Positions 4,354 through 35,102 are shown, counted from the stretch's first letter. The stretch: DNA of 64,000 nucleotides from Raja brachyura (GCA_963514005.1 OY740797.1:19716001-19780000), one strand, 5' to 3'. Notes: generated by a model not told the origin, from the letters alone. Made by a program: numbers and translations.

Positions 4354-4379
4354 TTATTTCATCGAACTTCTATTAACAT
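4354..4379 (-). CDS. Gene A candidate terminal cytoplasmic exon (DVNRSSMK*)
   Basis: Strongest acceptor downstream of the TM exon (taatcgtcttgttttctttag|); phase 1 gives D-V-N-R-S-S-M-K-stop. Not independently confirmed. Confidence 0.35.
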
Positions 4380-4983
4380 CTAAAGAAAACAAGACGATTA
4401 ACGTTTGTGACAACAAAATGAATATTGTGTCTTTGAAGCTAATCAAATGTATTGGCTAAAGTAAGAACTCGTGAAGGCGACGTTATATTTGAAAGTTTAG
4501 CAATACCGGTTTTAGCAATCTTGTGTTAGTGTTTTAACTTAGCATAATCGGTAATATGTAATCGAACTTGACTTTGAATTAAATTATCAAATGGTGATAG
4601 CGTGGCAGCAGCTGTGTCACATTCCAAAATTACAATGAAAATTAAAAGTGTAGTAAGTTAGAGCAGTTTGCTCACAAACAAAATCAAGATCCATATCAAA
4701 TTGCTTAAGATTCAATATTTTTAAAGAATAAAATGCAATCGATCAATTCCCCGTGGTTGTGAAATAAAGACGAAGTCGATGAGCGAATAATTCGAATTTT
4801 TAAAAAAAATTATGTTCCACGACATTTCAACTGTCATAATGTTTTTGTTATGTGAGTTTCATACCTAATAATGACCTGCAATATTTCTTCTTCTGCACTC
4901 GACATGTATTAACTCTATGTTCCTGTTTTCTGAAATACTATTAGGATATTAAAGCAATTGGCAAAAATAAATAACGGTCTTAC

Positions 4984-5082
4984 CATTTGTTACGTTTAGT
5001 CTGCGTACTGTCAACATTATTATCGGGACTAAAATTGCCAATCCGCCCACTACACATCCGAGAACCAGTGCGAGATCATAGT
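4984..5082 (-). CDS. Gene A transmembrane exon
   Basis: ctgcttcccctgcag|...|gtaaga, 99 nt, phase 1-1; DYDLALVLGCVVGGLAILVPIIMLTVRRLNVTN is a hydrophobic helix followed by an RR stop-transfer. Confidence 0.85.
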
Positions 5083-5349
5083 CTGCAGGGGAAGCAGATA
5101 CATTTAAAACTGTAAAACATATACATTAAGACACTGGTGAGAAATTGGGAGTCAAGAGGGCAGAGCACTCCGCATGTGTCTTTTTATCCTTGGTGTACAA
5201 GCATTCCAATATATACCTAATGGAACGAATTGCATTAATTGCAAGTTAGCGGAGAAATATATATCGTCTGCTTTGATCTGTCATTTTCAGACCGGACATC
5301 CCTTTCTACACTTCCATATGTCGAGTTACCCTCTCCACTGACTCTCAGT

Positions 5350-5377
5350 CTGAAGAAGTGTCTTGACACGAAACGTC
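5350..5377 (+). ncRNA. Minimal hammerhead-ribozyme core within a Penelope-related short repeat
   Basis: CTGAAGA-A-GTGT-CTTG-ACAC-GAAAC-GTC. Stem II carries a compensatory change relative to GGGT-CTCG-ACCC in other copies. Stem I is only ~2 bp. Confidence 0.55.
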
Positions 5378-7073
5378 ACCCATTCCTTCTCTTCAGTGAT
5401 GCTGCTTGTCCCGCTGTTGCACCAGCATTTCATGTCCATTTTCGGTGTAAACCATCATTTGCAGTTCCTTCCAACACAGATGTATGGTAAACACGTAAAT
5501 CGTGTCACATAATGATCCAATGAGCTTCTTTTTGTGCATGAAGGTTACTTATAAAGTGTAAAGTGAGACATGGTTTTCTCTTAGCAGATTCCATGTTTTG
5601 GGACTGGCGTACAGCACCTGATTCTACAGCTTTTAAGGTGTAACAAAAGCAACTTACCTTTACCTTTGCAAGCCTTTAACGCGTTAAAATATTTCAAGAA
5701 ACTTTACAGGAAGGCCTTTCAACAAAATGTGCCTCCAAATCGCAGATTATGAGAAATTAGGAGAGTTATAGCACGGAAACGGGTCATTCCGCCAAACCCA
5801 TCCATGCCGAGCAAGTTGCCCAACCGAGCTAGTCCCAGCTGCCTGCCGTAGGAACTCAACTGCATTGCTGGAGGGAAATGACGTTTCGAGTAGTGACCCT
5901 TCTTCAGATACCCTCCGCAGATGCTACCTGGGATGCTAAGTATCTCCAGAACTTTGCAGATGCTGGAAACTTGTAAAAAGCAGTCTCGTTTGCCTCCTAC
6001 TTACCTGATCCTGGCACATATCTCTTCAAACCGTTCCTGTCCTTATGGAGGAGACATGGTACTTGGTAGAAATTGTAGAATTAAACTAACATTTAAGGGG
6101 AGGTTATAAGACAGAAGGGCATGGAGGGGCATAGTGTGGGTAGTTGGAGGGTTCATGGACGGTAAACGGATGAGAGTAATTACATTTGAATACAACTGGA
6201 CGAATATATTGACATTTCATGTTGGTAAACTTATAAGGACTAGAGGATAAGGTCAGATGACCTCTCCGGGCATTTTGCAAGATTGTGGTCGTTCCTCGAT
6301 TATAATCCTTTTTTTGCCCATTGTTTATACCTTTTGATTTTAAACAAAAAAGATCTGGGTAAAACTGACAAGGCCAGCACATACAGTATTCCCAATTCAT
6401 GCTTGCCCTTCACATTGTGGCAGTGAGCAGCCTTTGTGAATCACTGCAGTCCTCTCAGTGAAGATAATTCCACAGTGTTATTGGGTAGGGAGTTCCAGGA
6501 TCAAATTCAAGCGACGATGCGGACGATTTATTTACAAGTCATGATGGTGTGTGACTCGGAAGGGAGTTCTGCAGGAGATGGCGCGTTCCTATACACCTGT
6601 TGCCCTTGATCATCATTTTCGAAAACTCAATTGACCTCAGCTCTGAAATACAAGATTATGGATCTGCGATGTTCCGAGGTACGGAATTACAAAGATTCAC
6701 GCATCTCTGGGAAGTGAAATTTCGCCTTAATACAAAAGTTAAAAGCCGACTTCCTGTCTTAAAGAAAATATGTCTTGTTCAGAGCATTCTCCTTCCCCGT
6801 TCGTCATATTATGTCCCTTTGTAGTCGAGAGTTGAATGTTTGCTTGCTACACCACAGTTTGCTGTTTCACACACACGATATACATTAAACGTATAAATTA
6901 ATCTCACGCAGTTCGAATTGAGAAAATATAGCGCTAAATGATACATTAGGTTGCTTGCACATCGATATTCTACTGTGAATAAATAGGTTAACATTTACTA
7001 CTCCACGTACAGTATTCGGCATGATGTCATTTCTAAATCGGATCGGAGGTTCCCAGCTGTTTGCCAATCTTAC

Positions 7074-7365
7074 CTGGCTTGACCGTGTAGTCAACTCTGG
7101 CCGGGAGCGCAAGGGAGACATGTGACACTAGGCATGTGTAAATATCAACGCGCCAGGTAGGCTTCGTTACTTCGAGAAAACTGGAAACCACATACAACCC
7201 CCCCCACGCTACTGGTGTTAACAGTTTTTTCCCCGGTGAAAATTGTTACACCATTTCTTTGCCAGGATATTTCGACTTCCTTCGGAAAAAAGGCAGCCGT
7301 TTGACACACAAGGTTTGGCGGCGAACTGCCATTAACTTGGCTAATGCTCAGGGGAGTTGGCGGAG
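7074..7365 (-). CDS. Gene A Ig C1-set exon (one extra G)
   Basis: ttttcttctgttacag|...|gtaaga. Frame-corrected translation APPTPLSISQVNGSSPPNLVCQTAAFFPKEVEISWQRNG...GLYVVSSFL...YTCLVSHVSL carries the C1 hallmarks C-x4-FFP, W and YxCxVxH. Confidence 0.88.
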
Positions 7366-7456
7366 CTGTAACAGAAGAAAAAAAAAGTTATGTTGTATGT
7401 CTTCTTTCCATGTCAATGAATACTTTGTGGTACACCTTGTGAAGACAACGCAGTAT

Positions 7457-7905
7457 CAGACTGGATGGACTCGGCTTGTACTCGCTAGAATTTAGAAGAT
7501 TGAGGTGGGATCTTATAGAAACTTACAACATTCTTAAGGGGTTGGACAGGCTAGATGCAGGAAGATTGTTCCCGATGTTGGGGGAGTCCAGAACAAGGGG
7601 TCACAGTTTAAGGATAAGGGGGAAGTCTTTTAGGACCGAGATGAGAAAAACATTTTTCACACAGAGAGTGGTGAGTCGCTGGAATTCTCTGCCACAGAAG
7701 GTAGTTGAGGCCAGTTCATTGGTTATATTTAAGAGGGACTTAAATGTGGCCCTTGTGGCTAAGGGGATCAGGGGGTATGGATAGAAGGCAGGTGCGGGAT
7801 ACTGAGTTGGATGATCAGCCATGATCATATTGAAAGGGCGGTGCAGGCTCGAAGAGCCGAAAATGGACTACTCCTGCACCTATTTTCTATGTTTCTATGT
7901 TTCTA
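7457..7905 (+). mobile_element. Young 5'-truncated CR1 LINE 3' end in gene A intron 2
   Basis: ORF 7476..7784 (YSLEFRRLRWDLIETY...RTRGHSLRIRG...FFTQRVV..WNSLP), 3' UTR and (tttctatg) tail; absent from the homologous intron of gene B. Confidence 0.92.
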
Positions 7906-9093
7906 AGTCCACATGGGTTCTCGGTACGTTCACTTTTAAACTAATGGAGTTATCACTGATTTATAGTTCGTCTTACCATGGACAGTAAAATACATTCAAG
8001 GAACACATAGGAATGTGATGTTCGATATAAGTAATATGCGGATAATGCCCCATTGTTCTGAATGGAAGTGCCAGATTTAGCGCGCCGAAGAAGCTGGCAG
8101 CAATATTTAGTAATTACATCAGCAATGACTGTGTGTAATATGTTTGTTGCAAATAATGATACAGGCCCTTCACGTTGACTATTAAGCACCAAGTTAATTA
8201 ATCCCATTTTCCTGTCGCATCCATATCAACTGTCCTCATTCTTCCCCGCCACAATCAATTAGCAAGGGATAATTTACAGCTGGTTACCCTACCAACCAGC
8301 GAAAAGTTGGCAATGGGTACGTTAGCGTAGCAACGGAAAAATACACGAATTTGCGAGGAGATTGTTAAACTGCACACATACTAACGAATCCAGCCCTGTA
8401 TATATTCACATCTCGCCGATGTATATGGTCTAGGGTTAGGGTTTGGCTATATCTATCGATCTGAGGTTTGTCCCCATAATAGTTCAGAGACTGGGATTGA
8501 GAGTTCAGATTAAGTAACTTTCACAAGGAAAACCTTGTTCCAGGCCACGATATACGGTATGATTGCACACGGTATGATTGAGTTATACTGACAATTGGTT
8601 GATAATAACAAATAAAGGTGATAGAACGTGCAAGTGACTTCCAATGTCACAACACATTTCATCTATATCTACTGCCTTTTCTAAATTTGCTCGATATATT
8701 GAACACATTCCATCTAAGTAAGATTCTATTGAACCGAACTCCATATTTGTCATTTACGAACACTGATATTTCTCAGTTAAATCTACAGCCAGTGTTTAGC
8801 TGGAAGGACAGCCTCTTGCTAAGGTGTATTGGGAGTCTCGTACAAGCAATCTGTTGGACATCTGTTTAAATCTTCTTACATTCCGTTTTTGTACTAACAA
8901 GTTATTGAATAGGGATCATTATTGCCTTCGGAAGAGAGTTTTGTGTTCATTCTCAACCTCAGCGAGTGCACTACCAGCTAAAACTCAGAGTTTATCCATG
9001 ACACAAAAACAGATTATTTTATGTGTAATAAATATTCGTTGCGAAGTTCAGTGACAGCGCCGTTTTACTCGCAGGCATTTCAACCGAGGGTCG

Positions 9094-9155
9094 ATCAAAT
9101 AGAACAAGTTGTCCAACAACTTTAGGCTGTGCACGCCACACGAAAGAAGAAGACG
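9094..9155 (+). mobile_element. 5'-truncated copy of the HDV-ribozyme short retroposon family
   Basis: Shares the 3' part (caactttaggctgtgca.gcca.acg.aagaagaag) with 41083-41228; flanked by direct repeat CGAGGGTCG (9085-9093 / 9159-9167). Confidence 0.75.
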
Positions 9156-10030
9156 AATCGAGGGTCGTGTAAATGGAAACCACGATTTGCAAGGACAGGA
9201 GCACTGCTGTTTCCTCAAAATACCTGTACATTCTGTTCGTGCTTTACAGATATTTGGCGGTTAAATAAAAATGCTCGAATACACAAAAATGTAACTCAGC
9301 GGGACAGACAGCATCTCCAGAAAGAAGAATTGGGTGACGTTTAGGGTCGAGACACTTCTTCAGTCTGAATCGTCACTCTTTCCTTCTCGCCAGAGATGCT
9401 GCCTGTCCCGCCGAGTAACTCCAGCATTTTTTGTCTATCTTTATTACATCCAAATCATGAGAGTTCCCTTTATTTACCCTTTTCCTGACTAAGGATAAAA
9501 CTAATATATTTCGGGATAACAATTCGTTATAACAAATACTGGGTAGACAATTTGTAGCGGTTGCGTCAAAAAGGATAAGATTGTGTGTGGACTGTGGGTG
9601 GACACTGTTCTGGCGAGGTTGTAACCGTGAGGAAAAAGCCGCCATACTTCCCACAGTCCAGATTAAATATCCAAGTGGCTTGAACATCTTCCCTGAAAAA
9701 CAATGTAGTCACTGAACCATGGGAATGACGAAGAGTGAATCTGAATCGTGGGCGATAGCAGCGCGACTCTACAGGAGGACAACGGAAAAGGCTTTCTGGG
9801 AGCACGAAACGAGAACAACCCTCCCTCGCCACACACATGCTGCCCGATCAGCTGATTATTTCCAGGCATTTCAGTTTTCAAGTCGGCGGAGTGGTTTGAT
9901 TTCATAACAAAAAATCCATTATTAGTAATCACCCAGTTTTAACCTAGTGATAAAATGTAATGTTATTCGCATTAGAGAGCTTAATTTATACTACAGAGAG
10001 CTTAAGTTCTCTCCGTCATGGGATACTTAC

Positions 10031-10336
10031 CCATTACAGTGAGCCTGGAGCCAGGTCCATCTCCGATAGATTGCTGCTGATGTTTCACTTTACAATAATA
10101 AACCCCGGAGTCCGCGACTTTCGCATTCAGCAGAACAAAATCCGCACTGGCCTTTTTGGTATCAATTATTTTTCTGCTGTCTGGTTCTATAAATGTCTTC
10201 TCTCCCCATCTCCACCAATAAACATCAGGAGCAACTTGTTGTATTGAGAATGTGCAGAACATGGACGCATTGCTTCCTCTGTGGACGGTCAGGTCTTTCG
10301 GGAATTGGTCCACTTTGGTCGAAGTTACTTCGTTGG
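10031..10336 (-). CDS. Gene A Ig V-set exon with germline-fused J-like strand
   Basis: ttaatttctggcag|...|gtaagt, 306 nt, phase 1-1; VDQFP...MFC...VYWWR...DSGVYYC...GDGPGSRLTV. Confidence 0.92.
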
Positions 10337-10538
10337 CTGCCAGAAATTAAGGAAAAATACTGAAAACAGTTGCACAAACTGGACAAGGAAAATGAATCAA
10401 GAGTTGAAAATTACAAAAGTAAATTAGAATTAGCGACAAGCTGGAGAAGCACTGTGACTAAATTCGCAGTGGGTAACTAAATGGAGTATTCTAAAACAGA
10501 ATTAAATATGATCGACCGGCACATATATCTAAAAGTAC

Positions 10539-10593
10539 CTTGCCAAACTGTCACCAGAAGGGTCAGGTACCGAAATGATGCTTTCACTGTCAT
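10539..10593 (-). CDS. Gene A leader exon
   Basis: ATG at 10593; MTVKASFRYLTLLVTVWQ + G|gtactt, 55 nt, phase 1. Same length, position and donor as the gene B leader. Confidence 0.8.
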
Positions 10594-10599
10594 GTTTCA

Positions 10600-10740
10600 A
10601 GAAAGTTGTTGGCCGCTTGTTGCAAATGAGGGACGTTTCCTAAAAGATTCTTGCAAGAAAGAGTTGCTGGTGAATAAATATTTTCCGCTTGTGACCATGA
10701 CATAGGATGTCACATGACGGTGAAGTGGGTTTCAAATTTG
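10600..10740 (-). promoter_or_regulatory. Putative proximal promoter of gene A
   Basis: Block conserved with 35110-35220: tgcaaatgag (octamer-like, 7/8 match), E-box GTCACATGAC at 10709-10718, and agtgggtttca. Confidence 0.4.
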
Positions 10741-11389
10741 GTTCAGTGTTGGTGGAGTGCTAGTATGCGCGAGGGTCCGCCCCCACTGCCAAGTGAACAG
10801 TTTCTATCGGGGTACAATTCTCTCTCAGACTTCCCTGGGTCCATGTTCAAATTATTTACTGACCATTCAGAAGAGAATCGCAGATCGTCCTCCATCGACG
10901 CAAGGGACTTACAACCTAATATGAAAAAAAAAGTTACTGGGGGGAAGGAAGGAGAATGCGGTTGAGTGGGAAAGGTTAATCAGTCATGATTGAATGGCGG
11001 AGAAGACTCGATGGGCCGAATGGTTTATTTCGTCACCGCTCTTGGGGTTTGATGTCTTTCTAATCTCTCTTATGTTCCATATCCCAGGGCTTGAAGCCCA
11101 CTGGAAAAACAAAGAGGAGTAACTAACCCAGATATTTCTTTCTTTATCTCTTTCGCTTCAACACAAGCGTCGCACCTGATTTTAATTGGAATATAAAGCA
11201 AGCAAGGATTAACTCAAATGGATGATTAGAAGGACCAAAATGTGCCACGAGGCGCTTGAAGAAGGATTACATGCAATCCCTTTTTTTAAAAACACCTACA
11301 TTAAAACAAGAGGGTAACGAAGAGAGGGGAGGGTGTGTGGTGGGGTGGTGGGGTGGGGGGGGGGGGTGGGGGGGGGGGGGGGGGGTGGG

Positions 11390-13330: not shown

Positions 13331-13627
13331 TAATGTGTTGCTATTAAATTAAATGTATTCATTTGCAATAAATTTGCAAAATCAAGATTTGCCGAAAAGT
13401 CTTCTCTATCAGATTAGTTGACCCAAATTAGGAAGAAATAATCCTTCAATGGTGCCACTCACACTGCCACCCAACGTGGCCTGCTCAATGATTTAGTAAC
13501 TGCAGGACAGGGATAGATTGGTAGTCATTTCCAGATTTCAGATTTGCAAATCAATTAATATAACAAGCTGCCAAGGGAATTGGCATAAACGGGTATCATT
13601 AAGACATTTAAATAAAACCCGGACAGT

Positions 13628-14640: not shown

Positions 14641-14654
14641 TGTTTCATTTTCCA

Positions 14655-15963
14655 TCTCTATAATACTAAAACTCTTCCTATTGTTTATGTTTGTGCTGAC
14701 AAGTTGCCCACGATGTTTCAATCTGCTTGTCCTATCTTCTTCCAACTGCTTGGCCACAGCCTTCCCATTTTCACATATCCTACTCACATTTTTCCCATCG
14801 AGGTGATAAACATCTTCCTGTCGCAGTCCCGCCTATATTTCCGAAGTTATTAATCCTTTAAATTTAAAAAACAGCCCCAAAAACTCATCCATTTTAGAAA
14901 AAAGAACCCAAATGACGTCCCAATGCACTCACAAGGCAGGGCGTGACGCTCCAGGAGGGAGGGACACTCCAGCGCTCGTGGTGAACAAGGAGGTATGGTG
15001 GCTGCAGGCGCCTGATGTCCAAACCTGGTGGGGAGGGTGGTGCTGGAGTGAGAGCCGAGGCCGGGGCTTGGGATGGGGCCGTAACAGGGGCCAAGAAAGA
15101 AGCTGCTGCTGGAACTAAGGACGCGCCTGGGTCTAGCGTTAGGGACGAACCCAGAGATGAAGTCCGGGCCTGGACTGGAGCCCAGGCAGCAGCCGCAGTG
15201 ATGACTGGAGTCTGGAGATGAAGTTGGGGCCTTCACTGGAAGCCAGGCAGCAGTTGAGCTGATGACTGGAGTCTACAGCCAGGGCCGGGCCCAGTTCCAG
15301 GCCCTGGGGCTGCTCTATGACCTGGATAGGTGCTGGGGCAGGGAATGGGGGTGAGGGGAGGAGAATGAGGGGGAGGGAGATGTGGTGGGAAATGCGGTGG
15401 TAGAGGGAGATGGGGGGGGGGGTGCAGTATGGAGATGGGGAAGGGTGGAGGAGGGAGATGCCCCCTCCCTATCTACCCCCTCCCTCTCCCTCCCTTTCCC
15501 TCTCCCTCTCAACCATCCCTCCGCCTCACTCTACCCCCTCCCTCTTCCTCTGCCCCCTCCCTCCCTCTCTGCCCCTCTCCCTCCCTCTCTGCCCCTCTCC
15601 CTCTATCCCCTCCACCTCCCTCTACCCTCCCTCTCTACTCCCCTCCCTCTCTACCCCTTCCCCCTCCCTCTCTACCACCTTTCCCTCTCTAGCCCCCTCC
15701 CTCTCTACCACCCCTCCCTCTCTACCACCCCTCCCTTCTCTAGAGATTGAAGAGGTAGGGTGAAGAGGAGGAGGAGGGAGTGCTGGGGGATGAGGAGAAA
15801 CGGGCCATGCCTGCGCAGTTGGGGACTATGCGTGAGTGGTGCAATATTGCATTGGGGGAACGGCTTACGTTGGGGTAACGGGTGAGTGGTGTAATCTTGC
15901 GTTGGGGGAACAGGTGAGTGGTGGAATCTTGCGTTGGGGGAGTAGACCTGTGCTTGGTCTGGT
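14655..15963 (+). mobile_element. Non-autonomous Helitron-like element with purine/pyrimidine tracts
   Basis: Starts a|TCTCTATAATACTAAAA. Its 3' region (tgcgcagttgggg.ctatg..gagtggtgcaatattgc) is shared with 46925-46985 and ends cttggtctggt (degenerate CTRR). No TSD seen. Confidence 0.5.
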
Positions 15964-16760: not shown

Positions 16761-16894
16761 ATCCCAATTAAGTATATTCTTTTCAAGAACAACAATCCCG
16801 TCCTGATGCAGAGTTTCAAGCGGAATCGTCAACCATCTGTTTACACCCACAGATCCTGCTCGACCCTCTGAGCTCCTCCAGCAGATATTTGCAG

Positions 16895-20290: not shown

Positions 20291-20291
20291 T

Positions 20292-23200
20292 CTTTTTTTT
20301 TTTGTAATATTTTTTTATTTGAAGTAATCAGTTTACAATGTATAGCTTACTTTATAAACTAACACCTTAATTCAATATTACTACAAATAACATATCAATA
20401 CTTAATATCTTCTATTTTTTGGAAATAAAGAAAAAGATATATAAAAGAGAAAAAAAGAGAAAAAAAAAGGGAATTAAAAAAAAAATAAAAAATTTCCCAC
20501 ATACTTCAACCATAAAAAAAAAGAAAATTTAAAAAACAAAAATATTACATATATATAAACAAAACTAAATACATTATACGAAATACTATTTCATACAGTA
20601 ATATCTATAATAAATGCGCAATAATATCAAATGTAAGTAAGTTATTTGCATCGGATTCCGTAGGGTGCCCGTCGAGCCGTGATTCCAAGAATAGCTACTT
20701 CTCTAAATACTGTATATATGGAGACCATATCGATTCAAAAGAATTATACCTGTCCAAAAGGACAAATCTAATTCTTTCCAAATTCAACGTCTCCAACATC
20801 TCTGCTTTCCACATTTTAATTGTTGGGGATAATGTTCCCTTCCAAAATTTAAGTATCATTTTTTTCCCTATTATTAAACAGTAATCAAAAAAATTTATTT
20901 GATTTACTGTGAGTACCAAATTTGGCTCCGGGATTCCAAATATTATTAATTTTGGTTCTGGGTCGAGTTCAACCTTAAGAACTTCCGAAACAACTTTAAA
21001 AATTTCAATCCAATAATAATTCAACCGTGGGCACGTTACAAAACTATGTATTAAATTTCAGATTCAGATTCAGATTCAGATTCAATTTTAATTGTCATTG
21101 TCAGTGTACAGTACAGAGACAACGAAATGCATTTAGCATCTCCCTGGAAGAGCGACACAGCAAATTATTTGAATAAATAACAATAAGTGTCCGGGGGGGG
21201 GGGGGGGGGGGGGTGATTGGCAGTCACCGAGGTATGTTGTTGAGTAGCGTGACAGCCGCCGGAAAGAAGCTGTTCCTGGACCTGCTGGTTCGGCAACGGA
21301 GAGACCTGTAGCGCCTCCCAGATGGTAGGAGGGTAAACAGTCCATGGTTGGGGTGAGAGAGGTCCTTGGCGATGCTGAGCGCCCTCCGCAGACAATGCTT
21401 GCTTTGGACAGACTCAATGGAGGGGAGCGAGGAACCGGTGATGCGTTGGGCAATTTTCACCACCCTCTGCAATGCCTTCCGGTCGGAGACAGAGCAGTTG
21501 CCATACCAAACTGTGATGCAGTTGGTAAGGATGCTCTCGATGGTGCAGCGGTAGAAGTTCACCAGGATCTGAGGAGACAGATGGACCTTCTTCAGTCTCC
21601 TCAGGAAGAAGAGACGCTGGTGAGCCTTCTTGATCAGAGTTGAGGTATTGTGGGTCCAAGAGAGGTCGTCGGAGAGGTTGACTCCCAAGAACCTGAAGCT
21701 AGAAACACGTTCCACCTCCGTACCGTTAATGTGGATGGGGGTGTGCGTGCCGCCCCTGGACTTCCTGAAGTCTACAATGAGCTCCTTGGTCTTCTTGGAG
21801 TTAAGGGCCAGGTTGTTGTCAGCGCACCATGCTGCTAAGTGCTGGACCTCCTCCCTGTAGGCCGACTCATCGTTGTTGCTGATGAGGCCAATCACCGTTG
21901 TATCATACGCATACTTGATGATGGTGTTTATTACTATGTACAGGTGTGCAGTCATAGGTGAAGAGGGAGTAGAGGAGGGGGCTCAGCACACAGCCCTGTG
22001 GAACGCCGGTGTTCAGGGTGAGGGTTGAAGAGGTGTGCTTGTCTAACCTAACAGACTGGGGTCTGTTGGTTAGAAAGTCCAGTATCCAGTTGCAGAGGGA
22101 AGGAGCGATGCACAGATTACCGAGTTTGGCGATCAATTTTGATGGTATAATGGTGTTGAATGCTGATCTGTAATCGATGAACAGCATTCTTACGTAAGTG
22201 TCTCTGTTGTCGAGGTGGGAGAGGGCGGAGTGAAGTGCCGTTGAGATGGCATCCTCCGTACTCCTGTTCTTGCGGTAGGCAAACTGATAGGGATCCAGTG
22301 TGGGGGGTAGGCAGCTTTTGAGGTGTGCCAGGACCAGCCTCTCGAAGCACTTGGTGATGATGGGGGTAAGTGTAACTGGGCGGAAGTCGTTGAGGCTTGC
22401 CGCAGTGGAGTGTTTTGGCACTGGCACGATGGAGGTGGTTTTAAGGCACGTGGGGACAACTGCCTGGGCAAGTGACAGGTTGAAGATATCAGTCCAGACG
22501 TCTGCCAGCTGCGCCGCACAGACCCTGAGCACGCGCCCGGGGATGCCGTCAGGGCCAGCAGCTTTACGTGCATTAGTCCTACTCAGTGCCACGTATACGT
22601 CGTGCATTAGTCCTACTCAGTGCCACGTATACGTCGTTTTGCTTCAAATTTGCTTCAAGATTCTTACATTTATCACAAATAGAGGAGAGACTAGGAAAGA
22701 TACTTTTTAATTTGGTTTTCGAGTAGTGTAATCTATATATAACTTTAAATTGTATCAATGTGTGTCTGGCATTCAAAGAACACCAATGTATTCTTTGTAA
22801 GCTTTCTTCCCAAGTTTCTTTTATGATAGGTAATCCAATTTCATTTTCCCATGCTTGACGATATGTTTCAGTTGTTGGGTTCTCTTTATCTAAAATAATA
22901 TTGTATATATAAGCTATAAGCTTATCCGTATTTGGATGTAAATTAAACAGCTCATCTAATAAGCCTGATTCTTTATTTTTATAGTCTTGTGTGTTGCATT
23001 TAATGAAATCTCTAATTTGTAAATACCTAAAATGGTGTTGTGAAGGTAGTCCAAAAATATCTTGTAACTCTTCAAATAATAAAAATTTTCCATTTCTATA
23101 AAGGTGTCCTATCCTTTTCATTCCTGAATCCTCCCACAGTCTAAACCCCGCATCTAAGGTTGAGGGTTTAAACAGTGTGTTATTCCTAATTGGTAACCTA

Positions 23201-24614
23201 AAAGAAAGATTATCCAGATATAAGGTCTTAACTATCTGTTTCCAAATACGCCTATTATTATGAATTATAGGGTTGTCCCTATAAGTCTTTTTTTGTACTT
23301 CCTTTGGTGCGAAAATAATCGACTCTATATTGAAAGGTAAACAGTCTTCCTTTTCCATTTTTAACCACATTGGTTCATCATCCATATTTACCCACCAAAA
23401 ATTCATATTCTTAATCTGGACTGCCCAAAAGTAGTATAGAAAATTTGGAAGTGCTAGCCCTCCATTTATCTTAGACTTACATAAATGTTTTTTACTTATT
23501 CTATGACTTTTGTAATCCCAAACAAAACTATTAACAATATTATCAATTTAAAAAAAAAAAATTTTGGGGAGAAAAAAAGGAATTGCCTGAAATAAATATA
23601 ACAATTGTGGTAAAAAAATCATCTTTATAGCATTAATTCTACCGATCATAGATATAGGGAGTGTTTTCCAATATGAAATGTTTTTTTTAAGTTTCTCTAA
23701 TAATTGATAATAATTAGCTTTAATTAATAATTTATAGGATTTAGACACATTGATTCCTAAATATTTAAATTTATCTGTAACTATTTTTAATGGGTATTTT
23801 TGTAATATATTTACATTTATACCAGTTATAGGCATAATGTCACTTTTATTCCAATTAATCCTATATCCTGAAAATACGCTAAATTCATTTATAACATTGA
23901 ATAACTTGGGAATACTACATTCCGGCTTAGTAATATAAATCAGAATATCGTCTGCATATAAAGATATCTTATTATTTGTTGTGTCAGTATTATACCCATA
24001 TATTTCAGGTTCTGATCTGATTCTTTCAGCCAGAGGTTCTATCACCAAGGCAAATAATAAAGGGGATAACGGACATCCCTGTCTGCATCCCCTAAAAAGT
24101 CTAAATTTAGGTGATAGTATTTGATTGGTTAAAATTCTTGCAGTAGGGTTAGAATATAATATTCTTACCCATTTACAAAATCCATCCCCCAGTTGATACT
24201 TTTCCATTATATTAAATAAATATGACCATTCCACCTGGTCGAATGCTTTTTCAGCATCCAACGATATAACTGCTAATTCTATATCTCTTCTTCTTCTCGA
24301 GTAGATAATATTAAACAAGCGTCTAAGATTATGTGATGAGTAACGTTTTGGAATAAAACCTGTTTGATCATAATGTATTATTTTGGAAATCACTAAACTT
24401 AGTCTCCGAGAAAGTACTTTAGTTAATATTTTTTGATCAGTATTTAAAAGGGCAATCGCTCGATATGATCCAGGATCTTCCAGATCCTTATCTAATTTAG
24501 GAATTAATGTGATTGTAGATTCATTTAAAGACTCTGGTAATTTTCCTAACTCATAGGTGTGTCTGTACACTATTTGTAATCTTGGTGAAAGTAGATCATG
24601 AAATTTTTTTTTTT
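20292..24614 (-). mobile_element. 5'-truncated L1-clade LINE (RT to 3' UTR), interrupted by a Rex1 insertion
   Basis: ORFs 23548..24570 ([25 protein letters not shown]), 22579..23406 and 20695..21024; AATAAA and poly(A) at ~20292-20320; same family as 59385-64000. Confidence 0.95.
21058..22636 (-). mobile_element. 5'-truncated Rex1/Babar-clade LINE nested inside L1
   Basis: [13 protein letters not shown]...DIFNLSL...[19 protein letters not shown]...[17 protein letters not shown]...[12 protein letters not shown] (YADD mutated, one frameshift); (AATCTG)n 3' tail at ~21058-21084. Confidence 0.92.
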
Positions 24615-25599: not shown

Positions 25600-26092
25600 T
25601 CCATCACTGTTGCATCATAGCTGCAGTGGATCGCGTTGATGGAAATAGACGGGCGGCGGCGCTGACTTTAAAATCGGGTGCCTGGGATCTGTCGCCGAGA
25701 TCGCCAGTTGTGGAACTCCATCCAGTGCCGCCTGTTCACTTGGAAGCCGCGGTCTCCGGTAAGGAGGTGGCCGTTCCAGGCACCCCAAGCCACTGAGAGG
25801 GCTCTCCCGTGGGTCGGAGCACCATCACCCGGCGAGAGGGCCAGAAACATCGGGCCTCCATAGCGGCGACTGTGGAGGCCTCAATAGGCCAGACCAAGGG
25901 TGGACATGAGGATGGGGACTGGACTTTGTGCCTTTCCCTACAGTGGGAACCAATGTGGGGGGATGTTTTTATGTTTTAATGTTAAACTTCTTTGTTAAAG
26001 CTATGTTGTATTTTTATTAGTGTGCTGTAAGGACATCTGAATTTCCCCTGAAAAGGGGATTAATAAAGTATTTATTATTATTAATTATTATT
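25600..26092 (+). mobile_element. Unclassified non-autonomous retroposon-like repeat
   Basis: CpG-rich body ending in gaatttcccc...ggggattaataaagta plus (tta)n, a LINE-type hairpin/poly(A)-signal/microsatellite 3' end. Confidence 0.4.
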
Positions 26093-26194
26093 CTATATTG
26101 CAATTCCTTCAGCTACTTCCTATCGAGGAGTATTGTCAGGCGATATTTCACTTGAAGGGGCAATCATGGAAGATGACCTACCAATTTGAAGGTT

Positions 26195-26640
26195 GAAAGG
26201 CTGAACAAGTTAGGTCTTTATTCTTTGGAGCGCAGAGGGTTAAGGGGGGGGGGGGGGAGTTGATTGAGGTCTTTAAAATGATGAAAGGGATAGACAGAGT
26301 TGATGTGGATAAGCTTTTCCCCATTGAGGGTAGGGAAGATTCAAACAAGAGGGCATGACATGAGAATTAAGGGACGGAAGTTTAGGGGTAACATGAGGGG
26401 TAACTTCTTTACTCAGAGAGTGGTGGCTGTGTGGAATGATCTTCCAGCAGAAGTGGTGGAGGCAGGATCGATTTTAACATTTAAAAGTAAAGTGGATAGG
26501 TGTATGGACGGGAAGGGAATGGAGGGGTATGGTCTGAGTGCAGGTAGATGGGACTAGGGGAAAATAAATGCTCGGCATGGACTGGAAGGGCCGAGAAGGC
26601 CTGTTTCCGTGCTGTAATTGTTATATGGTTATTTATATGA
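26195..26640 (+). mobile_element. CR1 LINE 3' end
   Basis: QTRGHDMRIKGRKFRGNMRGNFFTQRVVAVWNDLP followed by the gggccga.aggcctgtttccgtgctgta tail. Confidence 0.88.
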
Positions 26641-28590
26641 TTATAATTTTACACGGTATTTAAAGAATTCCTCAGTTACAGTTGCTCAGTTATGTTGCAG
26701 TTGCTCAAGACATTAGTGAGGCCGCACTTGGAGTATTGTCTTCAGTTTTCGTCACCCTATTGTAGTGAATGTTATTGTTGCAGAGATGATTTGCGAGGAT
26801 GTTGCCAGGAGTAGACTGGGGAGGTTGAGCACGGTAGGACTTTATTCCTTGGAGCGCAGGAGTGATCTTATACAGATATATGATCATGAGGGTAATTGAT
26901 AGGGTAAACGTCTACTCTGTCAAACCTTAAAACTTCCATTAGGCTACCCAATTACATTGTTTATCCATGCAGCCAAGCCTGAATCAATGTTTTATTTCTG
27001 GATAAGTATTGCCTCATTTTGTACACTGTACTCCAGTTCAATCCACTTACCTTATTCTTTTCTGCTTTTCAATTCTGTCTAAGTAAAAATGAACAGTGCC
27101 ATGTTCTTTTTATATGGCCCCATTAATCTCTATTCATAGGTTTGTGTATTAATGCTCCCAAACACCTTAGCTCATCCAATAACTGGATATTATTTGGTGT
27201 TTATCTTTCCAGGAATGTGGGCATCATCAACAAATCCAGCATTGATCATCCGTTGCCCTGAGAAGATGGACATTATCCGCAGGCCTCTAATTACTGCATT
27301 CCTTCATTGAATGAACTCCCACAATGCAATTGGGAAGGAAGCACTCAGATTTAGAAGTAAACCTGATGATGAAATCATTTACCATTAGATTTAAACAAAT
27401 CTGACATTGAGAACTACAACCATTTTGTTGCATTTGATTATGGCTCGTTTATACTTTCAATATCCATCCAATTTCATTTAATTTGCAGTTGAAAAGGTAT
27501 ACATCAAGGGATACTATTACAAAAATGATGTCAATGCATAAAATGGTTAAGTTACAACTTATCTGTTATAAGTCATTAAGTCGTAAATTCAGACAAACTG
27601 ATAGAGCATATTTAATAAAGACTCGATATCTATGCAATCGATTCATTGCTCAAAAATATATTCTAAGAATTAATTTCTTACCGATATCATTTTGTGGAAG
27701 AAATTAAAAATTTAGAATGAGTTAAATCTGGCATAAAATTAGATCTAATAAACACCAGTGATAAATAGATTACACCGTTTGAACTTTTAAAACATTTCAA
27801 GGCATAACTCTTTCCCGTCAAGATCATAGACAGTTTATTTTTCTACTCTCATAGTTTATTTCATACCACATTTGAAGTTTGTCAGTTTTGCATTTATATA
27901 TCTTTCTGGAAGAAAGGGACTGAAAAAATATACAAATTCAAATGGATGCAACCTAATAGTTACCAGCATCTTTATATCAGATCTAATTTCGCATATTTAT
28001 TATAATTTAATTGGAAACGATTTGTCAGGAAATAACTTTTTCCAATATATGTTTTGAGCAGTGGATTAAGTTTATAACCTTTGCCTCATTTGTGAAATAT
28101 TCTGCACTAATTAATTTGGATTCAACATTTGTGGTATAATTTGAATCAGGCAGGCGGGTTGCAGACATCGGAGTCATGGTGACTTAACTCTTTAATCACC
28201 AGCCTCAGGCACGCTGAGGTGATGGAATGATGGGAGAGCGCAACATTCAATGTTGGCACCGCCCAGATGGAAAAAGGTCATGATGCTAAATTGCAGAAAT
28301 GGATTGACAAAGTCTGTCGTACTTCGCTGAAGCCACAAGGTGGAGCCCGCCTCTCATGCAGTGAAAAGAGGCTCCCTATGGCAGATAAAAGCAATTTCTT
28401 TTTTCTGATGAAGGATGCAGAAGAGCTAGACATCAGTTCGGAATTGGGATTTGGCCTTTCAACAACAACAACATCAGGAAGCATATTTTTATTTAGGTCT
28501 TAGGATTTAGTGCAGCTTTTAAGACTGAGATTGTGGTCTGGTTTGGAGTAAATAGTGCAATTTTCAGTATAATACGTTTAGAATCAGTCA

Positions 28591-28696
28591 GGGGTGGGAG
28601 ATTGCAACCTTCACGTGGTTGTTTCGACGAATGCAATTAACATGGTGGTCACGTGATCTTGCAACTTTAGGCTGTGAATGCCGTACACAAGAAGAG
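28591..28696 (+). mobile_element. HDV-ribozyme short retroposon, internally deleted copy, antisense in the gene B 3' UTR
   Basis: Begins exactly at GGGGTGG; TSD GA(A/T)TCAGTCA at 28581-28590 / 28697-28706; lacks the CCGCCC of the P1 3' strand. Confidence 0.8.
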
Positions 28697-28713
28697 GATT
28701 CAGTCAGTTGTTT

Positions 28714-28723
28714 CTAGCATGAT
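28714..28723 (-). CDS. Gene B last coding exon ((G)SC*)
   Basis: ctttgtttctttaacag|A TCA TGC TAG after an 80-nt intron. Read-through of the previous exon would also stop immediately (GGG TAA). Confidence 0.5.
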
Positions 28724-31700
28724 CTGTTAAAGAAACAAAGCATTTAAAGTTTATATCAACTGAATTATTGTGATACGCGTTTCTCGTCCCCTAACGGTCT
28801 TACCCGTTTTCGATCACATGCTCGGAGGTCTTTCCATGTTCCTCTCTGTTCATAGTTTGCTCTGATGTCTCGACCAATCGGTCAACCTTTACCACGGAGC
28901 CTAGATAACACAAATTAATTGGGTGCTATAGTGCAGATTTGGGTGCTATAGTGCAGATTTGGCGATCGTGAGGTATTTTGAATGTTAACATATTTTCTTA
29001 CACCACTCTTATTATTATTATGTGCCGACAAGATATCCAATGGGCGCCGATTCCCAATTGTCCATTTTGTGCTCCCGACTAAAATCGATTTGTAGCCTTT
29101 GTATCCAGATGGGTTCGAAGTCAAGGCGAGAGAATCACTACTAAATTATACTCTGAATAATACTCTGCATGTCAGTTTTGAAGACATTCCCAACGCTTCA
29201 TCGGACAGGGATCAGCCTCGGCTGGGCTCCACCCTTCAGATGCAAAAACAATGAGATGGGGACCAATTCGGGCAGATGCAGAAATCATAACATTCAGCGG
29301 AGTCCTGACTGTCCACAAACATGAAAGAAGGAACGGCGATAGTGCCGACAACTTTTAAATCAAGTGATTGGGAAATAACCAATTTATCCAATATGCATTG
29401 GCCCAAGATAAGCAGTTGCACAAAGCTGTTACTTGAGGAAGAAAACCGCTGCACGTGGCGACATGTAAATTACAACCGCTCTCATTTATTTTCCTATTAA
29501 TATAATTGTTTTATAACAGTTCGATTAGAAGACGGTATTGTTATCCTCGATATTAACGATGATGAACAATTTATTTTTCTAAGCTCTTTCAATGCTCTCT
29601 TTTGATTTGGGATTTTTATAAGTGAATTTGGAACACTGGTGATAACGGAGACTTGACAGAATTATTGTCCTCAGTGAGTCTGGGGATGGAGAACTGATAT
29701 AATTCTGTACCATTTGGGGGATCACGATCTTGTTATTAACAATGTGTAAATTGTGGCCAAATAGCATCAAATGACGTAGCGACATTTGATTCTCCGCAGC
29801 ACCATTTTACAGGAAATTTGAAGTTGAACTCTAGAAAGAAGCTTGATTCACCTTTGGCAGAGCTTGATCCAAAAACAATTCGCAAGGTAGCCAACACCAG
29901 TAGAATGATCAATGTACCTCCTACATTGCGAAGGACATGGACAACGCGAGCCGAACCTGCAGACGTAAAACATCATTGAGCGATAAGACAATTATCTCAA
30001 GTGAATGAACAAACTATAGAATTTTATTTGTGTAAAGAGCTTTATCAAGTGTCACTATACTACAAAAATATCCAAATAAAATAGCAACATTAGGCAAATG
30101 GACACTGCACAAAATAAACGCGAGATCTTGCTTCCAACATGAACAATATTGTTATTGCATTAAATGTCAACGAGTGATACATTTCCAAGTCAAGCTAGTG
30201 TGCGATTTGGAAGACAGCCTGCAGGCCATGGTGTTCACATGCACCAGCTGCCCTTGTCCTTGTTGGTGATCCAACCAGTCCAGAAATCTATCAATGTCAA
30301 TCCTCCCTTTTCAAACATCCTCAATGCTTCGAGGTAGGGAATTACAAAGAGTCACACATTCCTGAGTAGAGTCATTGTGTCACAGAATGATACAGTGTGG
30401 AAACAGGCCCTTCGGCCCAACTCGCCTACACCGGCCAACAATGTCCCAGCTACCCTAGTCCCACTTACCTGTGCTTGGTTCATAACCCTCCAAACCTTTC
30501 CTATCCATGTACCGGTCCAACTGTTTCTTAAACGATGGTACAGTCCCAGCCTCAACTACCTCCTCTGGCAGCTTGTTCCATATACCCTCCACGCGAAAAT
30601 GTTACCCCTCGGATTCCTATTAAATATTTTCCCCTTCACCTTGAATTAATGTCCTCTGGTCCTCGATTCCTCTACTCTGGGTAGAATCTGTGTATCTACC
30701 CGATCTATTCCACTCATAATTTTGTATACTTCCATAAGATCTCCCCTCATCCTCCTACGCTCCATGCAATAGAAACCCAGCCTACTTAACGTCTCCCTAT
30801 AGCTCACACCCTCTAGTCATGGCAACATCCTCGTAAATCTGTTTAAGAAGGAACTGCAGATGCTGGAAAATCAGAGGTAGACAAAAATGCTGGAGAAACT
30901 CCTCGAAATACTCTTTGAGGTCATTACCCATCGGTGGCTCCGCACAGATGGGACCGCTTTTATCCCCGAGAGGTCCCACTCTCTCTAGTTATCTTCCCCC
31001 CCCCCCTTTATTTATAAAATCATTTCGGATTTTCTTCTATGGTACCCGCCGGGGCTATCTCTTGGCCCATTTTTGCCCTTTTTAGTTTGCTCCTTAGTTC
31101 CCGAAACACCTACAGGGATGCACGTCCCAACTGCCTGTACCTGTCCCATGCATCCTTCTTGTTTTTGACTAATGTCTCAATTTCCCTTGTCAGCCAAGCT
31201 TCCTTTCGTTTGCCTGCTTCGCTTTTCACTCTAACGGGGACGTACACATCCTGAGCTCTCTTAAGTAAACTTTTAAATACATCCCACTTGGCCGATGTTC
31301 CTTTCCCCTCAAATAACCTGCTCCAGTCAACTTGTGCTAGACCTTCTCTCATACCCCCAAAATAGTGAAATATCGCAACATTACAAAGTAAAATCCCGAC
31401 ATATATAAAGAACGTGTACCTCTATCTCCATCTCACTGATTGTGTCCTTTTGATGATTTTTTGTTTGCTAACACCCCTGTCAAATGCCTTGAAGGTTTAG
31501 TCACGTCACAGCACTATAAATATTGAAGATGCAGATATAATTCAGAAAACAGATTATAGCATATGCGTCAGTTTGCCCGAACTCCCGCGGTGAATAAACA
31601 CGGTTCACATTCAGCCCTTCTCGTCGTGTTTGACCTGTATCCAACAACATTTATAAATCGGATCTGAGGTCTCCCTCTGTTCCCAGCTCTGTTTGCGAGT

Positions 31701-34700
31701 CTTACCTGGCTTGACGGTGTAGTCGACTCTGGCCGGGAGCGCAAGGGAGACATGTGACACTAGGCAGGTGTAAATAACAACGCGCCAGGTAGGCTTCGTT
31801 ACTTCGAGAAAACTGGAAGCCTCATACAACCCCTCCACGCTACTGATATTCACAGGTTCTTCCCCGGTGTAAATTGTTACTCCATTTCTTTGCCAGAATA
31901 TCTTGACTTCCTTCGGAAAAAAGGCAGCCGTTTTACACACAAGTCTGGGCGGCGAACTGCCTTTAATTGGGCTAATGTTCGGGGGAGTTGGCGGCGCTGT
32001 AACAGAAGAAGAAAATATGTTGAATATTTCCTTTCCATTGCCTCGTCACACCGCGACCTTGGACTCTCACTATCAGATCGGTTATCGGTACAATCGCTTT
32101 TACGCTCACTGATTTGTCATTGTTTTCGATTTCACCTTATTGTGGACAGTGAAATATATCCAAGCAATACATAAGGAATCCGAGGTTTGGATGTAGGTAA
32201 TATGCGGGGTTCTGAACAATGTTCTGAAGTGCCAAATCAGGAGCTTGGCGGGGGGGGGGGGGGGGGGGGGTGTATCATCGCTGGTAACAACGTTTTCTGT
32301 TCAGTTCAAAAATGACCGTTTTTTCGCGATTTGGTGCAAAGAATGATACGTGTAGAGCGGAATATCACAGAGACACACAGCACAGCACTGAGCAGCCCAG
32401 CTGACCTACTGCGTCATCAAACCTCCATCTCCATTTATTCAATGTTCATCTCCTATCAACTTTCCTCTTCACTCCTCACCACGACCAATCAACCGGGACA
32501 ATTTACAGAGTTTTCCTACCAGCCTGTGGCATGCGGAATAAACCGGAGCAACGGAGGAACGTCTACGCGTTGAAGGGGAGAACTATATATGGACGCACGC
32601 AGGATCTCGGTCGAACTTGGGTCGCTGAAGTTGTGGGCAGCGCTAACCAATGTAGCACTGTATATATCTAGATATCACCAATATCAATAATCAAGAGGCA
32701 GGCCGTAGTTGCATAGATGAGAGCTTGGTCCACACTTTAGTACCTTGGGGGGGGGGGGCTCAAGTGATACAGCTTTTGGCCCGGGAGGCTTCTCCACAAC
32801 GCTTAACTGCGCCATTTGAAGGCATGATAGAGTTACACTAATAATTATTAAGAAGGAGCTGCAGATGTCTGAAGAATGGTCTCGACCCGAAATGGCACCC
32901 ATTCCTTCTCTCCATAGATGCTGCATGTCCCGCTGAGTTACTCCAGCTTTTTGTGTCTATCTACTGATAATTACGATCGCCGTGCAAATATTAGACGCTT
33001 CGTCAATAAGTACAATACGCGAATGGGAAATCCAAACTTAGACTACGTCTCTTCTACAATTTGGCATTTTCCAAATGTACTCGGTTTGCTGAAGACGTTT
33101 GGTCCGAATAAGATTTCACTTATATCAGCTCAGAGTGGGTCATTTGCGAACGCTGATCTACCTCCGTCGGATCTACAATCAGTAGGTAGCTAGTAGGAGG
33201 CCTCATGTTAAATCGCTCTGCGAGTTGATGACAACTTTACGAGTTTATCATCGAGAATAAATAATTGGGGGGAAACGTGGGGAGACTGAGGACTGAGTCC
33301 TGTAAGAATATAATTGTAAGGACAGGAGCCCTGGCGTTTGCCCCCAAATGCCGTTAAATCTTACTCGTATTTTACAAAGGTTTACAAAGGTTACAAAGGT
33401 ATTTAAACGAGAATCCTCGGAGACGGTGATATTCTGCCCCTGGAGTAAGAATCCATCAAATCAAACCTCTCGGCGGTTTATAGGATTCATCTGTATAATA
33501 ACCATGGTGGTTTGATACGGGGTTCAGCTTTGTTTACAGCCGACGAATAAAAGAGTAGAATATTTAAGGCCGAGGCCGCTCCGTTCTTCAAATCAATCGT
33601 GGGTTGTTTGTGCGTCGGGTCTCTGTGTCACAAACCCTGTTGTCACAAACCCAACGATACCCAATCCAAATGAATATTCTAACATCCCGATCTCGAGAGA
33701 TCAATTTATTTTCTTCTTTCCAGACTTTAAGTGAATAAAGTAACAGATTTCAGAGATAATTTGTAAGGTGGCGCGTAAAAAGCGAAAATTATGTGTGAAT
33801 CAATATGGACTGTAAACACTATTCTTGTGAGATTGTAACCACTATTGGCGTAGAGTGGTGGCGTTTGAATATTGTTTTAAAGAACCTATCCAGGATGGGG
33901 GTGTTATTCCGTTGTCTTCGGGAGCAGAAATGGGACATTCGTATCACAACTAAGATTAAAATATCCACGTGGCTTCAACATTTTCCATTTTCCATGAAAA
34001 ACAATTCGAAAAAAACTTGTAATCTAAGTCATTTGATTTACTACATTCAAACACACCATGGGGTAAATAAAGCGTGAATCTGGATCTGGGTCGTGGGCAA
34101 TAACGCGAAAGTGGACAGCGCGAATCTACAGGAGTACACTGGAAAATTAACTGGAGAAGTACGAAATGAGGAAAATAACATTTTCTCTCTACACAGATGC
34201 CGACCCACTTACGGATTATTTAAATGTATCAGATTTGGAACGGTTTGCTTTTATAGTATAAATCTTATCGAGTTTTTGCCGAGTTATAAAATGTCATGTT
34301 ATTCATAATAGCGAGCTTTACCTGTACCCCGTGCACTTACCGAACACAGTGAGCCTTGAGCCAGGTCCATCTCCGATAGATTGCTGCTGATGTTTCACTT
34401 TACAATAATAAACCCCGGAGTCCGCTACACATGCATTCAGGAGAACAAAATCCGCACTGCCCTTTTTGGTATAAATTATTTTTCTGCTGTCTGGTTCTAT
34501 AAATGTCTTCTCGCCCCATCTCCACCAGTAAACATCAGGAGTAACTTGTTGTATTGAGAATGTGCAGAACATGGAAACATTGGCTCCTCTGTGGACGGTC
34601 AGGTCTTTCGGGAATTGGTCCACTTTGGTTGAAGTTACTTCGAAGGCTGCCAGAAATTAAGCAACAATACTGAAAACAGTTGGCCATCCGGACAAGCAAT

Positions 34701-35102
34701 ATGAACAAAGAGTTAAAAAATTCAAAATATACTAGAATCGGCCATAAACTAATTAAGAAGCACTGTAACTAAATTCGTGATTGGTAACCAACATTCAATA
34801 TTCTAAGGAGATACAAGGAACTGCACCCACTGGTTTACAAAAAAAGACACCGAGTGCTGGAGTAACTCAGCGGCCAAGAGTCTTCTTTAGATTCTGAAGT
34901 AGTTTCGACCCGAAACGTCACCTATCCACGTTCTCTTTAGATGCTGCCTGACCCATGGAGTTCCTCCAGAACTTTGTGTCTTTTTTAAAATAGAATATTA
35001 TAAAACATGACATGACATTCGGAAACCCCACATGTATCTAAAAGTACCATGCCAAACTGTAGCCAGAAGAGTCATGCATCGAACTGATGCTCCAAACGCC
35101 AT
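28714..35102 (-). CDS. Gene B: intact leader-VJ-C1-TM(Arg)-short-tail IgSF receptor, 287-aa spliced model
   Basis: Exons 35102-35048, 34646-34341, 31996-31706, 29956-29852, 28900-28804 and 28723-28714 total 864 nt in one open frame, all GT-AG; candidate AATAAA at 28493-28488. Confidence 0.88.
28804..28900 (-). CDS. Gene B cytoplasmic exon
   Basis: tttgtgttatctag|...|gtaaga; phase-1 open frame GSVVKVDRLVETSEQTMNREEHGKTSEHVIEN, hydrophilic with no Tyr. Confidence 0.65.
29852..29956 (-). CDS. Gene B transmembrane exon with intramembrane Arg
   Basis: ttttacgtctgcag|...|gtgaat, 105 nt, phase 1-1; GSARVVHVLRNVGGTLIILLVLATLRIVFGSSSAK. Confidence 0.82.
30365..31360 (-). mobile_element. CR1 fragments in gene B intron 3
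   Basis: CR1 3' end (~30365-30840) and ORF2 piece MREGLAQVDWSRLF...KWDVFK (31110..31352). Confidence 0.82.
31706..31996 (-). CDS. Gene B Ig C1-set exon
   Basis: cttcttctgttacag|...|gtaaga, 291 nt; APPTPPNISPIKGSSPPRLVCKTAAFFPKEVKIFWQRNG...GLYEASSFL...YTCLVSHVSLALPARVDYTVKP. Confidence 0.93.
34341..34646 (-). CDS. Gene B Ig V-set exon with germline-fused J-like strand
   Basis: ttaatttctggcag|...|gtaagt, 306 nt; VDQFP...MFC...VYWWR...DSGVYYC...GDGPGSRLTVF. Confidence 0.93.
35048..35102 (-). CDS. Gene B leader exon
   Basis: aaaATGG Kozak context; MAFGASVRCMTLLATVWH + G|gtactt, 55 nt. Confidence 0.82.

Follow-up and report, generated by a model that had tools for sequence, protein, structure and literature searches.

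Do germline-joined VJ genes of cartilaginous fish preserve the layout of the ancestor of antigen receptors, or do they belong to an innate receptor family of their own? This question is raised by two genes, here called A and B, in a stretch of 64,000 nucleotides (nt) of the genome of Raja brachyura (GCA_963514005.1, OY740797.1:19716001-19780000; the whole stretch is called the window, and positions are counted from its first letter). Genes A and B are tandem paralogues arranged head to tail on the minus strand about 24.5 kb apart, and each consists of a leader exon, an exon for a short immunoglobulin (Ig) domain of the V (variable)/I type with a germline-encoded strand resembling that of a joining (J) segment, one C1-set exon and a transmembrane (TM) exon. 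Their exon anatomy and their relatives in public databases indicate that A and B are probably two tandem members of a multigene family that extends across Chondrichthyes and consists of germline-encoded type-I membrane receptors. Both are ordinary members of this family, and gene A is possibly defective. The original prediction, which recognised here a non-rearranging multigene innate receptor family, is borne out by the relatives found across Chondrichthyes. Its further proposal, that the layout of the genes is the one proposed for the pre-RAG antigen-receptor ancestor, is overstated because the same V(J)-C1 logic has been described before in PRARP, SIRP and UrIg/UrIg2, and the comparisons tie several families.

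The exon borders were placed by alignment of the two copies and by location of splice sites. The leader exon of gene B (35102-35048, minus strand, 55 nt, MAFGASVRCMTLLATVWH) begins with ATG and ends at a phase 1 GT donor, and it aligns both with the leader of gene A (74.5% nucleotide identity) and, in tblastn searches, with the leaders of family proteins. The V(J) exon (34646-34341, minus strand, 306 nt) ends in IGDGPGSRLTVF and has AG/GT borders, and the C1-set exon (31996-31706, minus strand, 291 nt) carries a PPTP linker followed by the landmarks LVCKTAAFFP, a Trp and YTCLVSH. The predicted TM exon of gene B (29956-29852, minus strand, 105 nt, SARVVHVLRNVGGTLIILLVLATLRIVFGSSSAK) again has AG/GT borders and phase 1. 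The exons of gene A, likewise on the minus strand, are the leader exon (10593-10539, MTVKASFRYLTLLVTVWQ), the V(J) exon (10336-10031, 306 nt, with 92.8% nucleotide and 92% amino acid identity to that of gene B), the C1-set exon (7365-7074, 292 nt, with a +1 frameshift relative to gene B) and the TM exon (5082-4984, 99 nt, DYDLALVLGCVVGGLAILVPIIMLTVRRLNVTN), which is uncharged, carries a GCxGG motif of the family type and has AG/GT borders. A candidate terminal exon of gene A (4379-4354, minus strand, 26 nt) encodes (D)VNRSSMK and a stop codon, which an AATAAA signal overlaps. Every predicted internal exon of both genes has AG/GT borders and phase 1, so that all predicted junctions are of the GT-AG type and the introns are phase 1 as originally proposed. 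The proposal of two complete genes does not stand, the C1 exon of gene A being frameshifted as assembled (292 versus 291 nt) and the tails being putative.

The V exon ends in the J-like G strand IGDGPGSRLTV, which is joined to the rest of the domain in one germline exon. Pairs of heptamers and nonamers resembling recombination signal sequences (RSS) number zero on both strands of the 64 kb, against 0.9 expected from shuffled sequences, in agreement with the earlier statement that no RSS-split segments are present. The second exon encodes a true C1-set domain, as had been stated, with a Pfam E value of 1.1e-11 in gene B. The designation of the first exon as V is upheld in part: it matches V-set, and I-set and Ig_3 score equally (E ~2e-8), while the predicted structure of a homologue described below lacks a full C'-C'' region. 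A hidden Markov model (HMM) of the family matches the V exons with E values of 9.5e-41 (gene B) and 1.5e-39 (gene A) and the C1 exon of gene B with an E value of 7.2e-36. Within the window, the matches of this model are limited to both V exons, both C1 exons and the TM exon of gene A, and the listing of open reading frames (ORFs) together with tblastn likewise yields two exons of the V type and two of the C1 type, and no more, in the 64 kb.

Searches were run exon by exon, and trees were built for each domain. An exhaustive HMMER search with the V exon of gene B returned single-match relatives of 250-420 amino acids at 40-67% identity, together with many giant multi-Ig proteins whose high scores are sums of weak repeats. 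All the single-match relatives that were looked up are predicted proteins from sharks, rays or chimaeras, of the genera Heterodontus, Scyliorhinus, Mustelus, Heptranchias, Carcharodon, Chiloscyllium, Pristiophorus, Mobula, Narcine, Hypanus, Hemitrygon, Pristis and Callorhinchus. Several genes of the family lie on one chromosome in each species. A profile built from 16 members recovered 39 proteins at E <= 1e-35, all of them chondrichthyan; beyond these, two word-indexed searches, the reach of which is limited by the index, gave nothing above 40 bits and no bony-vertebrate relative. The family thus comprises at least 39 public gene models. Their automatic names are inconsistent, SIRP-alpha-like being the commonest and NCR3LG1-like, Ig lambda-1 light chain-like, tapasin-related-like, TCR-beta-like and CD276 homolog also occurring, and literature searches returned such automatic gene names only and no published description of the chondrichthyan V(J)-C1-TM family. 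The searches run turned up no characterised one-to-one orthologue. The original view that no ortholog can be assigned therefore holds for named, characterised genes and fails for uncharacterised models, among which orthologues and paralogues are clear across Chondrichthyes.

In the alignment of the 16 members, a leader is followed by a domain of the V/I type that carries WW(K/R)xGE, DSGxYYC and a J motif, GxG...V, with almost no variation (G111/G113/V118), and then by a VPPTPL linker, a C1 domain with the pattern C..FYP..W..NG...GLYxVSS...YTCLVSH, a TM segment of the GCxGG type and a tail with repeated tyrosine motifs of the type of the immunoreceptor tyrosine-based inhibitory motif (ITIM). 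The leader is split, and the G strand of the V domain is a germline J-like GxG(T/S)xLxV strand. The family has long forms, with an uncharged TM segment of the GCxGG type and several ITIM-type motifs (LTYAALxL, xVYAEV), and short forms, in which the TM segment has an Arg in its outer part and hardly any tail follows; truncated or secreted variants exist as well. In the tree of the V domain, which has no outgroup, genes A and B are sisters (100/99) within an elasmobranch clade of 28 rows (98/96), where ITIM-type as well as Arg-TM models from sharks and batoids occur. Between gene B and the models of Heterodontus (horn shark), the V domain is 68-69% identical and the C1 domain 54-55%.

The divergence between genes A and B is uneven along their length. 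The nucleotide identity, 92.8% in the V exon, is 90.7% in the C1 exon and 74.5% in the leader exon, and the TM exons are unrelated (46.5%). Homology is confined to two patches, 10025-10494 in gene A with 34335-34806 in gene B and 7028-7411 with 31648-32038, which extend no more than about 150 nt beyond the exons. The introns between V and C1, 2.3-2.7 kb in length, are otherwise unalignable, and the synonymous divergence (dS) of the exons is about 0.13-0.16. The ratio of nonsynonymous to synonymous divergence (dN/dS) between the two genes is 0.36 in the V exon. Since homology is confined to exons at a dS of about 0.13-0.16, this pattern agrees with exon-centred gene conversion, or with old duplicates whose 3' halves may have been exchanged. 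The divergence of the introns in itself points to exon-centred gene conversion, or to introns that were replaced by repeats.

The 3' parts of the two genes differ in how closely they follow the family. The TM exon of gene A matches the uncharged type, with an HMM E value of 2.4e-4 when every six-frame fragment of the window is searched, a blastp E value of 3.4e-5 to a Pristis model (P0168) and tblastn matches (E<1) from 12 family proteins. The terminal exon of eight codons proposed for gene A has a good acceptor, phase 1 and a polyadenylation signal, and a Mobula model ends similarly (P0173, ...VTSGVNRKR); as weak evidence this makes the exon plausible. The tail of gene A is predicted to have about 15 cytoplasmic residues without an ITIM, as in two Mobula models with an uncharged TM segment (P0172 and P0173). 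The TM exon of gene B, which was placed by a hydropathy scan and its splice sites, contains two Arg in or at the hydrophobic span, and it resembles a Mobula model (P0105) by eye alone. Two candidates for a terminal exon of gene B were rejected: 27905-27857 has only ATGAAATAAA in common with that of gene A and is not homologous to it, and 29679-29579, with 33 codons followed by a polyadenylation signal, is unsupported. A regular expression for the tail of the short forms gave no match in the window.

Genomic contigs of two organisms match 29103-35102, with differences of about 2-3% in the introns. The locus of gene B is therefore also present in close relatives or in divergent haplotypes. Three short matches (P0008, P0013 and P0018) were considered as transcripts and rejected, being ORFs that run into introns on short genomic contigs.

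Among the known systems, SIRP offers several likenesses. It has an N-terminal domain of the germline VJ type followed by C1-set domains, and it occurs in paired forms, one with an ITIM tail (LTYADL-like) and the other with a short tail and a charged TM segment; most members of the chondrichthyan family are automatically named SIRP-alpha-like. However, SIRP is V-C1-C1, whereas genes A and B and their family have a single C1 domain, and the activating forms of Chondrichthyes carry Arg instead of Lys. SIRP-alpha matches the family profile with an E value of 1.9e-28, but the scores of Ig lambda and UrIg2 are comparable, and the fold match of SIRP-gamma (Z 13.7) is no better than many others. UrIg and UrIg2 come from the same group of animals and share a single-exon VJ, a split leader and following C1-type domains. 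They are elasmobranch non-rearranging genes in which VJ is followed by three to eleven C domains, UrIg being secreted with three and UrIg2 having nine or more (PMC12227049). In contrast, genes A and B have one C1 exon between V and TM, their family has TM segments and variants of the signalling type, and the V domain of UrIg2 is not detectably closer to that of A and B than are the V domains of the T-cell receptor (TCR) or Ig light chains. The order of V(J) and C1 and the J-like GxGxxLxV strand are shared with Ig light chains and TCR chains, from which genes A and B differ in having neither separate V and J segments nor RSS and in a shortened C'-C'' region; the types of TM segment and tail in the chondrichthyan family are those of innate paired receptors. 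B7-H6, B7 and butyrophilins resemble the family in having an ectodomain of V plus a C1-like domain and a TM segment, and some models automatically carry the B7-H6 name. B7-H6 differs from the chondrichthyan family, in which the J-like motif hardly varies and the TM segment comes in activating and inhibitory variants, and it ranked below SIRP-alpha and Ig in the sequence searches.

PRARPs, reportedly described by Fu et al. in J Immunol in 2019, are said to be non-rearranging VJ genes with V-C1, a TM segment and a potential ITIM, distributed from bony fish to birds. To our knowledge, they have not been reported from cartilaginous fish. Their reported architecture is that of the chondrichthyan long forms, but the window holds V, C1 and TM exons with no ITIM exon found. 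It is conceivable, if rather improbable, that PRARP has its counterpart in cartilaginous fish in this family, representing a membrane-bound VJ-C1 lineage present in the first jawed vertebrates. If this were true, the family would supply a TM-anchored, signalling-competent relative of UrIg/UrIg2. A V(J)-C1 logic has thus already been described for PRARP, and PMC10751288 and PMC11599192 cite that work.

The idea that genes A and B are relics of the pre-RAG state, in which a V(J)-C1-TM chain would pair as TCR and Ig chains do and would stand closer to Ig and TCR than other non-rearranging VJ genes, draws on the single-exon germline VJ, the true C1 exon, the split leader and the phase-1 introns. 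Consistently, the best single-domain sequence matches in PDB are TCR V-alpha, Ig VL and shark V-NAR for the V exon of gene B (about 23-25 bits), and UrIg2 C1 (23.9 bits) and Ig lambda C (20.6 bits) for its C1 exon. The family profile matches the lambda chain (69.9 bits) and UrIg2 (55.7 bits) contiguously over V-C, and a conserved Cys with a Gly-rich motif at the start of the TM segment of the long forms could support dimers. However, antibodies and TCRs dominate PDB, and top ranks there mean little; SIRP-alpha (2wng) scores as well, with a contiguous V-C1 match of 102.6 bits in total (E 1.9e-28), and the V domain lacks a full C'-C'' region and has WW(K/R)xGE instead of a WYQQ core. The fold comparisons are equally spread. 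An AlphaFold2 model of a Heterodontus homologue (P0151) has two Ig domains, with a predicted local distance difference test (pLDDT) score mostly >90 in the ectodomain, and its V domain has a strand-free stretch of 12 residues where a V domain has the C'-C'' strands; this short stretch fits the tie between V-set and I-set. The top Foldseek matches of this model are V-C chains of antigen-binding fragments (Fabs), mostly light chains, and a TCR, but in a non-redundant structural search B7-H6, PD-L2, butyrophilins, membrane-proximal domains of major histocompatibility complex (MHC) class II, the V domain of IgNAR, CD79b and UrIg2 are tied at Z 14-16. A special place next to Ig and TCR is therefore quite unlikely. 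The same search gives some room to the alternative that the family is a cartilaginous-fish expansion of B7-H6-like ligands, shown to NKp30-like receptors, and does not consist of receptors at all: B7-H6 is the best rigid two-domain match (Z 15.8, root-mean-square deviation 3.2 A over 188 residues, 23% identity), followed by PD-L2, butyrophilins and B7-H3, the neighbours in the ESM Atlas by features and structure are clusters of the B7/butyrophilin type, and many members are named NCR3LG1-like or CD276-like by NCBI. These Z scores, however, are tied with those of many unrelated Ig pairs, the interdomain geometry comes from a predicted model, and the 60 best PDB sequence matches of the family profile include SIRP-alpha but not B7-H6. 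Moreover, a J-like GxG motif that hardly varies and a division into ITIM-tailed and Arg-TM forms that share their ectodomains are characteristic of paired receptors, and so a family of ligands is very unlikely. A prediction of homodimers for two homologue ectodomains, with a score of 0.00, gave no verdict and was used neither way. Sequence and fold comparisons single out no one relative, and nothing found places the family nearer to the pre-RAG ancestor than SIRP, PRARP or UrIg/UrIg2.

It is also unlikely, though less so than the readings just discussed, that one or both copies are functionless, decaying duplicates in a transposon-rich interval, whose likeness to functional relatives is maintained by gene conversion. 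This explanation shares much of its evidence with the points that weigh against genes A and B being receptors of the family, which are gathered here. The C1 exon of gene A is frameshifted as assembled, by one extra G in a run of eight (G8) at 7198-7205 (C8 on the plus strand), where gene B has GGAGGGG, and it is split over two frames into two ORF pieces that match the family HMM with E values of 7e-17 and 4.9e-15. The dN/dS of the C1 exon is 0.70, a value based on few sites. The V domain of gene B has an extra unpaired Cys (codon 34431-34429, minus strand, in LLNACVADSG), which could form an interchain disulfide or could be a damaging change; the residue at this position is Lys in gene A and Ser, Thr, Lys or Val elsewhere in the family. 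For both genes, the tail HMM and an ITIM regular expression found no ITIM-type tail exon in the window, so that genes A and B do not form the textbook combination of an ITIM and an Arg member. No terminal exon was found for gene B, which leaves its 3' end undefined, and its TM exon has no significant similarity to the TM segments of the family or to an HMM of shark Arg-TM segments. The sequencing runs that contain the V exon are DNA only, with none on record as RNA, and contigs of reads over 29103-35102 are genomic, crossing introns and showing repeat-driven joints as well, and are neutral on splicing. The idea of decay also draws on the homology confined to exon-centred patches and the LINE (long interspersed nuclear element) and other retroelement ORFs that fill the interval between and around the genes. 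On the other hand, the frameshift lies in a G8 homopolymer, a classic site of assembly error, and when the extra base is ignored the C1 exon of gene A is open, keeps all hallmark residues and has a 3' half nearly identical to that of gene B; the extra base could equally well mark a young pseudogene or an assembly error in the homopolymer. Furthermore, all exons of gene B are open with canonical splice sites, and the dN/dS of the V exon argues against decay. The absence of an ITIM tail is compatible with membership, as short-tailed members exist in the family, including the two Mobula models with an uncharged TM segment noted above.

By analogy of their motifs with SIRP-alpha and SIRP-beta, the long and short forms of the chondrichthyan family probably constitute a paired inhibitory and activating innate receptor system at the cell surface. 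The predicted transcripts would join leader, V, C1 and TM exons, and the near-identical ectodomains would bind one ligand. The long forms, with their uncharged TM segment and ITIM tail, would recruit phosphatases of the SHP type and be inhibitory, and the short-tailed Arg-TM forms would signal through an adaptor with an ITAM (immunoreceptor motif for tyrosine-based activation) and be activating. Gene B, which is intact through C1 and probably uses the TM exon with Arg, looks like the activating type. Since the V domain is more conserved than the C1 domain across the split between sharks and batoids, and since the dN/dS of the V exon is 0.36, these comparisons suggest a conserved and probably endogenous ligand rather than a diversifying one.

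The rest of the window contains retroelements and simple repeats. Between the two genes, 21224-24570 (minus strand) holds fragmented retroelement ORFs with RVT_1 matches (E 3.5e-38 and 4.1e-23), and one of these ORFs includes an ALKBH8_N-like segment (E 1e-15). Two LINE-type elements, at 59774-63628 (minus strand) and 49948-53419 (plus strand), have Exo_endo_phos and reverse-transcriptase ORFs, and the former has long open frames of 760 and 511 amino acids. Next to it, a short ORF at 59103-59414 (minus strand) resembles the C-terminal domain of a gamma-retroviral integrase of the murine leukaemia virus (MLV) type (E 9.1e-13) and is assigned from this match to a fragment of an endogenous retrovirus adjoining the LINE. 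Three GC-rich, low-complexity stretches, at 15382-15763 (plus strand), 44421-44600 (plus strand) and 46464-46991 (minus strand), have translations rich in Pro, Ser and Leu (PLPLSLS..., IHLSIYPS...) and are probably simple-repeat DNA and not genes.

Germline-joined VJ genes with a C1 domain are material for models of the origin of antigen receptors, and few have been described, namely SIRP, PRARP, UrIg and UrIg2. Genes A and B point to a further family of this kind, which is membrane-bound, has activating and inhibitory variants and a V domain conserved between sharks and skates, and occurs in all chondrichthyan lineages that were sampled. If this family were described, phylogenies of the V and C1 domains of Ig and TCR would gain an outgroup, and the immunology of sharks and rays would gain a likely receptor system of the checkpoint type.

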